Shown here: piece by piece, positions 4,450-9,760 of the stretch | How positions within the stretch are numbered: the first letter of the stretch is position 1 | Layout of the letters: every line of letters begins with the position of its first letter | From: Trichosphaerium sp. ATCC 40318 | Taxonomy: Eukaryota; Protista; Tubulinea | NCBI GenBank assembly: GCA_038496445.1 | Contig: JALMLS010000391.1 | Location: 1-64,000 of the forward strand | Direction of reading: 5' to 3' | DNA length: 64,000 nucleotides | The notes under the pieces: model-generated | Seen by the model: the letters and a program-made list of their open reading frames with translations, nothing else | The model's database searches: none | Told to the model about the DNA's origin: nothing | Position numbers and translations under genes: made by a program

Positions 4450-4764
4450 TTGGATCTTCCATTAGAGCTACTACTTGATATTATTGATTTAGATAATGAA
4501 ATTTACATAAAATGGCCTCTTATATCAAAATATACAGCAACAAGCACAAGGTTTGATAATAACTTGAACAAACATGGAAAATGGACAAAACACCCAGTAC
4601 CAAAATGGAGGCGGCGATGTAAAGAAAATGAAGAACACATTGTGTGGTTTAACGGTGGTCAAGTGTATTTTAATTTTGACTATCAAATAGCCATTCTTGT
4701 AAAAATTGACTATCAAATAGCCAATGTAAAAAAAAAAACCAAAGCCAGTAACAATAATAATTAA
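4450..4764 (+). pseudogene. F-box-like ORF fragment
   Basis: LDLPLELLLDII motif. The C-terminus is built from a 30-bp tandem duplication (ttgactatcaaatagcca twice) and an A-run. Confidence 0.35.
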
Positions 4765-4927
4765 CGTTCTCTGCAACAAGAGTCCGAGTTACATATGCCA
4801 TTGTACGTCCTCCGTTCATTTGTTACTTTTAAGCTTAATGCTAGGTAAAATTTACTTACTGCTTGTGAGGTGCGAGCAATGACTTATTAGTCGTTAAAAG
4901 TCGCCAAATCGATAACTATCAACAAAT

Positions 4928-7900
4928 ATGGCAGAGGAAACGCGTACTCCTGTTTTCTTCAATGAGCTTCACTATGAAGATATGCTTTCAGATCAATTTG
5001 AAGGTAACTAAACCGACTACAATTGATAAATCACGTGACAAATCTTTTTTCCAAAAAGGTTTCGAAATCGCCGCTCCAGGTGGTACAAACTTGAAGGGAT
5101 GGTCAGTTTCGCTTTATGGAGGTACGTTACCAAAATACCGTTAAATCACAACGGAGAAAAAAGATCCTCAGCTTTCTCTTGTGTTACTCCGTCCGTATCT
5201 AGCATATTCTTATCACGTGCGCGTCTAGGTGCCGATGGTAAGGTTTATAAGACGGTAGAACTGAAAGGACTTGTACCTGATTTACAAGTACGTTGAGTGT
5301 AATGACACGAGGCTAGATTGTTCTCTTTCCTAATCAAAACCAAGAACGGTTTCGGAGTACTCTTTTTTTTTGTAAAAGGCATCCACGACGGTACGACCAC
5401 GTTTTTTCCATCACCAACGCTAATGTTTACCACAAGGATCATCTAATGGCGATGGTATGGCTCTCGTAGATAAGAGTGGTAAAGTCCGACAATTTTTGAG
5501 CTACGAAGGCGCTTTTGAGGCTACTGATGGTAAATTACTTCTTGTGAAAGATTTGGTAAAATTTTTTAGGTCCTGCAAAAGGAATGACCAGTGACAAGAT
5601 ACCTGTCGCCGAATTCGAGTGGTCTCACCATGAGAACTCTCTTCAACTCCAAGGCAAAGGTAGTTGCTACGAAGATTTCGAATGGAAAGGTCCAGTAGAC
5701 TCTACTCCAGGCGAAGTTAACGGTGAACAAGTATTCGGTAAGGTTTTACTAAGACCTATTTCGTGTTTTGCTTATTTTTAAATTGTAGAGGGCGTTCCAA
5801 TCTCCGCTCCAGAACCTGGTCACGTGACTCTTGAAACTTTCACTGGCATTAATCGTGAATCGCATCATACCACTGATTATGTTAATAAGAGTATGCTCAT
5901 ACTAAGACGTGCTAATACTTTCCAACTTGGGTTCAAAACAAATCTTGGTACGAAATTAGCATTTAACTTGTTTTTACGCTTCTTTTTTTGACTCTTAGCC
6001 ACTGTTTTATTAATGCTGGATACATAGAACCTAGTGCGCTTACTATTGTACTGACTGTATTCCCTGAGACTAGCGAACAAGTCAAAATCAAGGCATGATG
6101 TCACATTCGTTTTATTACTAATTCTCGAAAAGGTGTTAGATGCAAAACCAGAAGAGTTGAGTAAGACAGAGTGGCAGCTTTTGTGAAAGAAAAGTCAGAT
6201 GATGGCTTCTTAGCAATGGTCAGGTATACAAAACGACAGACGTAAAATCAAGTTACTCTAACACAATTTTTCTCTGTCAGTATTCCCGCCAATGCAAAAA
6301 TCGGACAATACTCACTCTCTGTAACAAACGGAGATGTAACAGACGAATCAACTCATCCCGTTATCGTTCTATTCAATCCATGGAGTGAAGATGATGGTGT
6401 ATATATGGAAGATGACTCTTGGAGAACTGAATACGTTCTAAACCAGGAAGGAGTTGTTTGGGTACCCATCTCTTAAAAACACAGTTTCTGAAGTTGCTTT
6501 GCTAACACGTTTCTCAAAGCAAGGAAGTGAATGGGTTAAAGTACCTCAAAGATGGCTTTATGCACAGTTCGAGGAGTTGAGTGTTTTAGCATGCTTGAAG
6601 CTTGTTGAAATGATACCTCTTGAGAATCGTGGAGATCCTGTTTTATTCTCGAGAAAATTAAGTGCTCTTGTTAATGTTCAAGATGAGGGTGGAGTACTTG
6701 TAGGAAACTGGAGTGGTACGTCATCTACCTAATGGGTTAGAAACGCTAAATTTTCGTTAGGTAATTATGCTGATGGCACTAAACCAAAGGCGTGGGTAAG
6801 TTCACATCCTATTTTGGAACAGTTTTATGTAAGTGGCCAAGGTGTTAAGTATGGTAAGTCTTTTACTATTATCTTTTTGAGTTTATCATGTATTGATCAT
6901 TATATGTAGGTCAATGCTGGGTATTTGGTATGTTTAGTATGTAAGTGTTTCTAAGTATACTTACATTGTTTCAAGCTGCCGTATTGTGTTCGGTCTGTAG
7001 GTGCCTTGGTATTCCATGTCGTCCAATTACAAACTTTAACTCAGGTTCCCAAAACATTTCTGTAGTATTTTCGCTTACTCCTTGTTTTTTTAGCGCATGA
7101 CACCTCTTTTGATAGAGGTATCGAGTATTATTTTTATCGTGATGGCGATGGAAAGCTTGTTCAAGACAGTTCTGTCACATCTGACTCAATTTGGTACTAA
7201 GCTACAACTTGTTTAAAGGTTTTTTGTATCTGATTATTTCTTTAGGAACTTTCATGTGTGGAATGATGTCTGGTACAATATCGTTGTTGACAAAGTACTT
7301 GAGTTTATTAATAATGTATAGGATGCGCAGACCTGATTTACCTTCCGGATATGGTGGATGGCAAGCACTAGATTCGACACCACAGGTATGCCTGGTTGAA
7401 ACCAAAGAAGTTTTCAAACACATTCGTTTAGGAAAAGAGTGAAGGTATTTTCCAGACAGGACCTTGTCCTATTACCGCTATCAAAGCAGGGGAAAAGGAT
7501 AAATCTATCAAATACGATTTGGACTTTATATACGCTGAAGTAAACGCAGATGTAAAGTATGGTCATATCATTTAGTTTTTCTTAGAATTGTATCTGACTC
7601 AATTTAAGGCACTTCGCAAAGGGAGAGAGTGGTGAGTATGAACTCATAAAGGTAGAGACTACCAAGGTACGTTTTTATTACATCTGTTGCGGAGGTATGT
7701 AAATATATATGTAGGTTGGTCAATCTCTGTGGACTAAATCTGTTGGATCTTTTTTGAAAACTTTTGCAACATCTCAGTATAAGTACAAAGAAGGCTCGGC
7801 TGCAGAACGTGCAGTGCACCTTGATGAAAACAATGGTACGTATTTTAATCTCATATGTTACCGGTTATAATTACTAATATCTTAATTTCTGTAGAAGCTT

Positions 7901-8785
7901 TCACTGTTACGTTTGATGTCGATCACAACAAGGTTAGATAAAAAATACGAATAAAACAAGAAAAATAGTTGACTTCTCAAACAGGTTGCTGGTGAAGACT
8001 TCGTTGTCAAGATGAAACTCAAGCGTATTAAGACTGAAGGAGCTGTTGATACAAATGTAAAGTACGTCCTCAAAACTCAATAGCAGAGCGAGGCAGAAAA
8101 AAAGCATTCTGAACTAATTTTCCATCCTTTAGTGTCACCTTCAGCGCTTACGCTGTTTACTACACTGGAAAGCCTAGAAGTAGTTTCAAATCAGAAAATA
8201 CTAACCTTACTATCCCTGCTGATGGTTCCGAAGTTGATTTCTCTGTGCCTATTACTGTGAATGACTACTTGGCTCTTCTAGATGATGACCATCAAATGAA
8301 GTTTAACGTTTATGTTCTTTCGGAAGATAAGAAAGAAACAGCACTACAATCTCTTGATTTTGACCTTGATAACCCTGTGATCAATATCGAACTAGAAGGT
8401 GTATCAGATTTGACAATAAACGAAGGTAAACACAAAAACCAAGTACGCTCAGATTGTTAACAAAAGAAAATTCTAGGTGACAACATAAATGTTAATGTTT
8501 CAATGAAAAATACACTTCCTGTTGCACTCACAGGTGCCACATTTATTGTCGAATGTCCTGGATTATTGAAGCGTAAGAAAGTCACTATTTCAGATGTATC
8601 CCCAGGCGCTGATGCAAAAGCAACGGTAGCTGTTAAGGGTAAGAATCAATTGAGCTTTTTTTTAAAGTTGGTTCTAAAGTATCTTTTTTCTAGCGACAAG
8701 GAAAGGAAAGCTTGATTTGAATGTCACGTTTGATGCTAAAGAACTTGCTCCTGTTCATGGAGACGTTGATGTAACCGTGAATTAG
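4928..8785 (+). CDS. Animal-type protein-glutamine gamma-glutamyltransferase (transglutaminase) with an N-terminal bacterial-type lamin-tail-like domain; many short exons
   Basis: Catalytic motifs YGQCWVFAAV (Cys), [10 protein letters not shown] (His) and [11 protein letters not shown] (Asp). Also [21 protein letters not shown], the N-sandwich HHTTDY..LRR and C-terminal barrel NTLPVALT. Confidence 0.93.
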
Positions 8786-9760
8786 TTTGAGTACAACTCA
8801 TTGGTAAAGAAACAACTTTTCAAATAAAGAGTTATTTTCAGAAACACGTGTAATCTCCAACTAAAGTTTATAGCGTTTGTTTACTATAATGTGTTTTGAC
8901 AAAGATGTTGTTGGTTAAGGTCTGCTAGACAATGAAAAACATTGAAGTTAGTTTCAGAAATCAGTGATTTAGCTGTTTTTGGTTGTTTACAAAGATCTAA
9001 CTAATGCGTAGTAGCTTGTAACAACTGTTTGGTGCGTAAACGGTTTAGACCCAAAGTGAAACCATAGCAAACATGGAAAAATGCGGATTGAGATGAAGGA
9101 ATTAGTTTAGGTTCTTGGTTTTTTTTGCATTTTTAGTTAAACTCTTTTTCCCACAGTCGTTCAACGTCTCTGTATTGCTTTTTGAGCGTAGAAAACGTTG
9201 TTCGATATTGTCTCACGTTAAGTGCCTCAGTTTTTTAGGTAGTAACCGGAAAAATGCGCAAAATAAGTGAGTTTGTTTATTCACAGGTTGAAAATAAAAA
9301 CCAAGAATTTTTGACTTGTAGCGACTCCAGACCGAAACAGCCAGTGTTAATAGGGACTGTCACAAATACTGTTTAGTTAAACCTTTATGTATACCCAATC
9401 CAGATCTTTATTGCCACCGATGATAACCCAACGTAAGGGCAGCATCGCTTTTGAGACAGTTTCGAAAATTATGACATTTTTAATTTAATTTATTATTTAC
9501 GGATTACGAGAATCATTGAGACGTTTTTACTCACCTCAGAACCGTCCTAACTTTAAATTGCTACTTTGAACATTTAGCCAGTATTCTATACTTAGAGTAC
9601 GTAAAAAAATTTTTGCGATTCGTTCTTGCTGTGCCGAGGAAAAGTACCGCAAAGCAATTTTTTTACAACAAACTTTTCAAAAATGTCGGAATTTCTGAAT
9701 GTGTTAGGTAAGTTCATTGTATTCAACGTTGCACTACTCTATGTTATTCTAAATACCTAA

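Follow-up and report, generated by a model that had tools for sequence, protein, structure and literature searches.

A transglutaminase gene with an N-terminal lamin-tail-type module

The window analysed here is a 64,000-nucleotide (nt) stretch of DNA from Trichosphaerium sp. ATCC 40318 (contig JALMLS010000391.1, positions 1 to 64,000), and its plus strand carries, at 4928..8785, a gene with many short exons. The gene encodes an extended module of the lamin-tail domain (LTD) type, followed in the same reading frame by a transglutaminase. We assembled the exon chain from GT/GC..AG sites together with the joints present in RNA, and obtained 25 exons encoding 844 amino acids (aa) once a G found in the transcripts after 6172 is counted. 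The start ATG at 4928 is the first ATG downstream of an in-frame stop, and the GC content, 33-41% across the window, is even around the gene.

Exons 1-6 (4928-5003, 5059-5121, 5229-5287, 5345-5390, 5437-5529, and 5570-5737) yield 168 codons when spliced and encode residues 1-168, the extended lamin-tail-type module; the five introns between them measure 55, 107, 57, 46, and 40 nt and are all of the GT..AG type. Intron 6 (5738..5788; 51 nt, GT..AG, phase 1) marks the precise border between the module and the linker-transglutaminase part. Exon 7 (5789..5947), which is in frame with exons 1-6, encodes a short linker and the start of the transglutaminase N-terminal beta-sandwich, and matches Pfam Transglut_N even when searched alone (E 8.3e-5).

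Transcript evidence was provided by intron-less contigs from four runs of three studies, aligned to 4700-8900. The 5737|5789 joint across intron 6 is crossed by spliced contigs of X1, X2, and X4, which represent all three studies. The most extensive of these, X1 record 1 (1237 nt), runs from the 5′ untranslated region at 4875 to 6701, through all of the module exons into the transglutaminase; the 263 nt lying between its aligned pieces 4875-5000 and 5569-5736 correspond exactly to the end of exon 1 plus the predicted exons 2-5. Since this contig spans both parts with the exact exon lengths, the module and the transglutaminase are on one mRNA and are not two genes, and a single spliced transcript encodes them both. 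An earlier note on this DNA had proposed the in-frame fusion at these positions and had named RNA across the 5738-5789 junction as a check; the proposal was borne out, and the two separate transcripts that would have spoken against it were not found among the contigs.

Further downstream, intron 8 (6093..6132; 40 nt) is of the GC..AG type, and is the only one of the gene's 24 introns with a donor other than GT; the RNA joint 6089>6130 contains 4 ambiguous letters, and the cut given here is the only one that keeps the frame. At 6172..6173, the transcripts of three studies (X1, X2, and X4) read GGG, in contrast to GG in the window. As written, the window has a frameshift in the transglutaminase after residue ~253, downstream of the module, whereas the transcripts are intact; adding a G after 6172 gives the 844-aa product with only one stop, the terminal one. 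The missing G is probably a homopolymer error in the assembly, although it could be a real allele. The spliced product is identical to the protein P0151 (844 aa) save for one residue, and it also agrees with P0001, which falls in the same cluster as P0151 and showed 100% identity in the exon 6 search. P0001 comes from the MMETSP0405 set for the amoebozoan Trichosphaerium sp. ATCC 40318.

The enzyme part of P0151 matches, in order, PF00868 Transglut_N (188-289, 2.2e-13), PF01841 Transglut_core (418-519, 2.2e-13), and PF00927 Transglut_C (759-843, 3e-8), all above the cut-offs. The Cys, His, and Asp motifs are all included in the spliced product, and we take GQCWVF, NFHVWNDVW, and WQALDSTPQ to hold the catalytic triad residues, from what is known of papain-fold transglutaminases. 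The GQCWVF motif with the catalytic Cys lies on an 18-nt micro-exon (6910..6927), the letters of which are present within the joint 6855>6975 of X1, X2, X4, and X5. Exons 16 (7246-7272) and 17 (7322-7385), at 7246..7385, carry the His (NFHVWNDVW) and Asp (WQALDSTPQ) motifs, and exons 23-25 (8133..8785; stop codon 8783-8785) encode the C-terminal Ig-like barrel domain or domains, as defined by Pfam Transglut_C and the RNA joints. By these sequence features, the enzyme part is an animal-type transglutaminase of the papain fold with a complete predicted catalytic apparatus. Its protein cross-linking is presumably Ca2+-dependent; the Physarum enzyme reportedly has Ca2+-dependent transamidating activity.

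Several side observations concern the transcripts of this gene. Intron 22 (8062-8132) is read through in frame in P0001, adding residues between ...DTNV and SVTFSAY, and this protein stops early at the end of its contig; the same intron is spliced out in P0151 and in the aligned contigs, reflecting occasional retention. An exact 18-nt direct repeat, TTGACTATCAAATAGCCA, is located at 4676-4693 and 4706-4723, with starts 30 nt apart, ~200-250 nt upstream of the ATG and just upstream of the start of the X1 contig (4875); it may be a promoter element. Contigs of X2 and X4 that align at 6685-7271 do so only over the exons of the catalytic core and then continue on both sides into 255 nt unlike the window. 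These contigs are most likely transcripts of a paralogous transglutaminase, and P0266 (MMETSP; 574 aa, 57% identical) may be such a paralogue.

Bacterial relatives of the module and its place among lamin-tail domains

The module comprises residues 8-170 (~165 aa): the LTD core occupies ~8-107, followed by the extension 108-170 that exon 6 encodes. An exhaustive HMMER search of representative proteins with exon 6 alone (55 aa) returned 234 matches at E<=1e-3, among which the characterised ones are multi-domain bacterial proteins. A word search with residues 1-185 retrieved 188 proteins within the length band, with 39-52% identity over 74-95% of the query; the bacterial modules are 43-51% identical over 86-95% of the 185 aa. 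A nuclease Pfam domain accompanies the module in ~80 of the 118 bacterial matches listed, by manual count, and the named bacterial matches span at least seven phyla. One of them, P0004, is an ExeM/NucH member (NF033681, E 1.8e-175), in agreement with the earlier note, which had recognised the module as that of ExeM/NucH-type secreted bacterial nucleases. The bacterial proteins examined are secreted and multi-domain, and the other partners of the module in them include Endonuclease_1, Exo_endo_phos, Big_5, T9SS, RTX, PEP-CTERM, and dockerin domains. Most bacterial holders carry at least two copies of the module, often two to five.

An alignment of 48 sequences defined a ~165-aa module with a mean column identity of 54%, in which 18 invariant and 33 nearly invariant columns, including E13, H15, Y16, E25, and E28, are common to amoebae and bacteria. 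Models of bacterial endonuclease clusters from the ESM Atlas can be superposed on residues 4-181 with template modelling (TM) scores of 0.82-0.89. The search of the N-terminus yielded bacterial modules, as the earlier note had expected; the top two matches, however, were eukaryotic orthologues (202 and 191 bits, versus 172 bits for the best bacterial one). Neither P0001 nor its residues 1-185 matched NCBIfam NF033681, and only the accessory N-terminal module, not the nuclease region, is common to it and ExeM/NucH.

None of the seven proteins with the fusion has a signal peptide, since each starts at most 10 residues before the first strand; in the Trichosphaerium protein, the first beta-strand begins at residue 9-10, right after the initiator Met. 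In the bacterial proteins, the first module copy mostly begins at residue 11-45 or later. The earlier note had regarded the module as long domesticated on the basis of its roughly six spliceosomal introns and the lack of a signal peptide, and both features support that view. As a side observation, the closest bacterial module, P0134, is encoded on the metagenomic contig L002:26-4452, where its gene is directly followed by an EEP nuclease gene with RTX repeats; the module protein and the nuclease are separate neighbouring genes and are not fused.

The relation of the module to canonical LTDs emerged from profile comparisons. Among the 48 module sequences, 38 match PF00932 at E<=0.01, with no other family recurring, and some bacterial copies pass the PF00932 gathering score of 34.3 bits (P0002, 74.8 bits; P0134, 39.4 bits). 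In hhalign, the 48-sequence module profile aligned with the canonical LTD of P0126 (200-320) at 98.6% probability (E 1.4e-15, columns 5-107), and these two results uphold the LTD kinship suggested by the earlier note. The AlphaFold2 model of the module is all-beta, with a mean predicted local distance difference test score (pLDDT) of 92.7 and a predicted TM score (pTM) of 0.86. Its best match among solved structures in VIA-align was the DUF4876 protein 4q1z (Z 8.3, 145 residues, model residues 1-161), and the Atlas feature search with exon 6 returned only unnamed clusters and DUF4876.

Several results count against the LTD assignment. Residues 1-185 of P0151 and of P0001 did not match PF00932 at E<=10, and the modules of the orthologues score 12.8-16.2 bits against it, below the cut-off. 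The Ig-like domain of lamin B1 (7dtg) aligned with the model in VIA-align at Z 6.0 (2.5 Å, 87 residues), a level at which many unrelated Ig-like sandwiches score alike. Foldseek against the Protein Data Bank (PDB) gave no significant match, with lamin matches at E 0.06-0.4 (best 0.06). Separately from these results, exons 1-6 searched singly had no Pfam match even at E 10, and PDB sequence searches with exon 6, residues 1-185, or the 48-sequence profile found no relative. Taken together, residues 8-107 read as a divergent LTD, whose homology to canonical LTDs is established by profile and transitive searches and whose direct sequence match stays below the threshold of the Pfam model, and residues 108-170 as an extension specific to this extended-LTD subfamily.

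Distribution in amoebae and origin of the fusion

The nearest transglutaminases to the enzyme part include that of Physarum polycephalum (P0281; Q5KSV5), an enzyme already characterised biochemically, and that of Arcella intermedia (P0280, N-terminally incomplete). Local phmmer searches located the module at residues 2-169 of the Physarum protein (E 7e-35) and at the very N-terminus of P0222, P0111, P0276, P0277, and P0279. The module-plus-enzyme architecture is thus colinear from residue 1 in Physarum and five other proteins besides Trichosphaerium, and the eukaryotic modules are 36-53% identical to the Trichosphaerium module. The linker between the module and the enzyme consists of a few residues in Trichosphaerium and of ~45 Pro-rich residues in Physarum and P0277.

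In the unrooted maximum-likelihood tree, a branch supported at 99/98 separates the seven modules linked to transglutaminases from the 41 bacterial modules. In the tree of the enzyme part, nine amoebozoan proteins are separated from the animal ones at 100/100, and P0277 is nearly identical to the Arcella protein. The same sub-pairs, Physarum with P0279 and P0222 with P0111, occur in both trees. The monophyly of each part and the congruent sub-pairs suggest one acquisition and one fusion before the lineages split, followed by vertical descent. With its single N-terminal extended LTD colinear with that of Q5KSV5, and with both parts placed in the amoebozoan clades, the gene is very probably the Trichosphaerium member of a Physarum-type transglutaminase family, in which the module would have been acquired once, fused, and inherited vertically. 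The fusion is consequently an old feature of the lineage and not a new one, and the gene belongs, as an orthologue or paralogue, to an enzyme family known from the Physarum cDNA of 2002 onwards. This overturns the implication of the earlier note that the fusion was new and had been acquired in this lineage alone: Physarum Q5KSV5 and five other proteins share it, and the modules and the enzyme parts are each monophyletic. Within Amoebozoa, the fusion is already widespread, the best matches are eukaryotic, and the phylogeny is vertical, the very outcome that the note had set against its own proposal.

Among the 265 proteins fetched for the module, the eukaryotic ones by source are transglutaminases of this family only. 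Because the module is spread over many bacterial phyla, diverse architectures, and multi-copy arrays, as opposed to one eukaryotic family, an ancient bacterial origin appears most parsimonious. Two points weigh against this history. The sampled bacteria do not enclose the amoebozoan clade, and the unrooted module tree is silent on the direction of transfer; in addition, the amoebozoan origin of five of the seven fusion proteins is read from the enzyme tree only.

Three other accounts of the fusion were considered. That it is an artefact of chimeric assembly, of bacterial contamination, or of two adjacent genes misread as one would be in keeping with the 1-nt frameshift at 6172, by which the assembly is not error-free, and with the fact that the RNA nature of the runs is only guessed; the intron-less contigs of three independent studies that cross the joint, one of them spanning 4875-6701 with exact exon lengths, the independent transcriptome proteins with the same fusion, and the even GC content leave this account next to no credit. 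A recent horizontal acquisition and fusion in Trichosphaerium itself, giving an undescribed architecture, would suit a genome reported to contain unusually many foreign genes (PMC10521059), and the similarity of the module to the best bacterial modules (up to 51%) is about the same as that to the eukaryotic ones. We consider it very improbable, given the colinear architecture in Physarum and the five other proteins, the monophyly of the modules and of the enzyme parts with their congruent substructure, and the six introns within or next to the module; contamination of the other six sequences by Trichosphaerium is excluded by their 36-53% identity. Somewhat less remote, though still improbable, is a vertical eukaryotic origin, in which an ancestral lamin-type LTD was kept only in Amoebozoa, or the reverse transfer of the module from an amoeba to bacteria. 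LTDs do exist in eukaryotic lamins, and the unrooted tree places the amoebozoan clade next to the sampled bacterial modules, as their sister, and not among them. Against such an origin stand the 60-aa extension (108-170), which is common with bacteria and lies outside the 109-position Pfam LTD model, and the 43-51% identity to bacterial modules, while the Pfam LTD, built largely on canonical domains, is matched weakly. The restriction of the eukaryotic holders to this one transglutaminase family, and the breadth of the bacterial holders in phyla, architectures, and multi-copy arrays, speak against it as well.

Proposed function and comparison with known systems

In the model that we favour, a single transfer from a bacterium most probably brought in the extended-LTD module, which became joined to the enzyme before the Physarum-like, Arcella-like, and Trichosphaerium lineages diverged and then gained introns under vertical inheritance. 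The module would be a non-catalytic, Ca2+-stabilised binding domain on a flexible linker of variable length, and would anchor the cytosolic enzyme on a polymeric target, such as the cell cortex or membrane, the cell coat, or a polyanion. Cross-linking after Ca2+ influx would thereby be localised, as in Physarum wound plugging, and the role of the tether would be analogous to that of the membrane-anchoring N-terminal extension of animal TG1. The combination of a variable linker with a folded module under constraint has, in sequence terms, the character of an independent, tethered domain. The modules of bacteria are strongly acidic, with a mean net charge of -17 and an isoelectric point (pI) of ~4.06, versus a mean charge of -3.9 in the amoebozoan modules; the acidic positions 13, 17, 22, 25, 28, 127, and 148 are kept in the latter, and the overall pattern is more in keeping with a metal site than with direct binding to DNA. 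A Ca2+-dependent tethering domain that localises cross-linking is a possible reading of the module, which we put forward tentatively; the targeting or Ca2+/membrane-binding role proposed in the earlier note is likewise tentative. The broader proposal, that domestication of the extended LTD happened a single time in eukaryotes, at the root of Amoebozoa, to give a Ca2+-switched anchor deciding the site of cross-linking in wound sealing of giant multinucleate cells or in the cell coat, is slightly more speculative still.

Two observations are unfavourable to an anchoring role. The ligand may have changed between the bacterial modules (net -17) and the near-neutral amoebozoan ones, and deletion of the LTD from ExeM slowed DNA degradation in vitro and not in vivo, where the LTD is dispensable (PMC6085458). 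The authors of that study state that the role of LTDs is not elucidated, and that membrane targeting has been suggested (PMC6085458). In the main functional rival, the module is directed at nucleic acids and would guide the transglutaminase to DNA, to chromatin, or to DNA that lies outside the cell in the slime or coat. A DNA role would agree with the nuclease domains carried by about two-thirds of the bacterial partners listed, with the EEP nuclease gene next to that of the nearest bacterial module (P0134), and with the slower degradation of naked plasmid DNA by ExeM when the LTD is removed, as measured in an assay free of membranes (PMC6085458). However, the strong acidity of the bacterial modules disfavours direct binding to DNA in the absence of a bridging metal, the LTD is not needed for DNA degradation in vivo (PMC6085458), and the module also accompanies non-nuclease Calx-beta, RTX, T9SS, PEP-CTERM, and dockerin proteins. 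We therefore regard a DNA-directed module as unlikely, and distinctly less probable than the Ca2+-dependent tether.

These results allow the N-terminal extension of the Physarum-type enzymes to be assigned to a bacterial extended-LTD subfamily that the Pfam LTD model misses. Our literature search found no paper linking an LTD with a transglutaminase, and the Trichosphaerium genome paper mentions neither (PMC10521059); nor did the search, which did not cover the 2002 cDNA paper, find one calling the Physarum extension an LTD. It may therefore be that no publication has yet placed the extension in the nuclease-type extended LTD subfamily, with InterPro outside this check. The family would provide a clean example of an ancient domain acquisition from a bacterium by an amoebozoan, in which introns were gained and the invariant residues kept. 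A way to find the ligand of the module is also offered by a eukaryotic enzyme whose activity can be assayed and whose known physiological role lies in damage-induced cross-linking; if the anchoring reading is true, assays of the Physarum enzyme would give a first experimental handle on what this widespread bacterial module binds.

Among known systems, the ExeM/NucH and endonuclease-I-type nucleases (P0004, NF033681; P0016, MDN5923584.1; Shewanella oneidensis ExeM, PMC6085458) carry this ~165-aa module too, including the extension that follows the Pfam LTD core. Unlike them, the amoebozoan protein lacks a nuclease domain and a signal peptide, carries the module once, and has a far less acidic surface, and the partner of its module is a cross-linking enzyme of the cytosolic type. 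The nuclear lamin tail (PF00932; PDB 7dtg, 1ivt, 3gef) belongs to the same superfamily by profile for residues 8-107, and the predicted fold of the present module may be a similar beta-sandwich, but this module has ~60 extra residues with three or four added strands, its similarity is below the Pfam threshold, and it has no intermediate-filament context. The alignment with the DUF4876 protein BT_1938 of Bacteroides thetaiotaomicron (4q1z) covers both the core and the extension, with 8% identity and a root-mean-square deviation of 3.8 Å; a Z of 8 possibly reflects only a common arrangement.

In animal transglutaminases, N-terminal appendages ahead of the beta-sandwich, such as the membrane-anchoring region of TG1 and the activation peptide of factor XIII-A, control location or activation. 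These extensions are short, unstructured or lipidated, and unrelated in sequence, whereas the appendage in the amoebozoan enzyme is a folded domain of bacterial type. The closest counterpart is the enzyme of Physarum, for which a transglutaminase cDNA (Wada et al. 2002, Eur J Biochem 269:3451), a 101-kDa enzyme (Mottahedeh and Marsh 1998), and damage-induced substrates (Wada et al. 2007) have reportedly been described, all three cited in PMC10419021. The module of Q5KSV5 is only 39% identical to that of Trichosphaerium, and the Pro-rich Physarum linker of ~45 residues differs from the short one here. The two proteins are nevertheless alike in having one extended LTD from residue 1, a linker, and the Transglut_N, core, and C domains, in lacking a signal peptide, and in the placement of both parts in the same clades, and their enzyme parts are 36% identical over 99% of the length.

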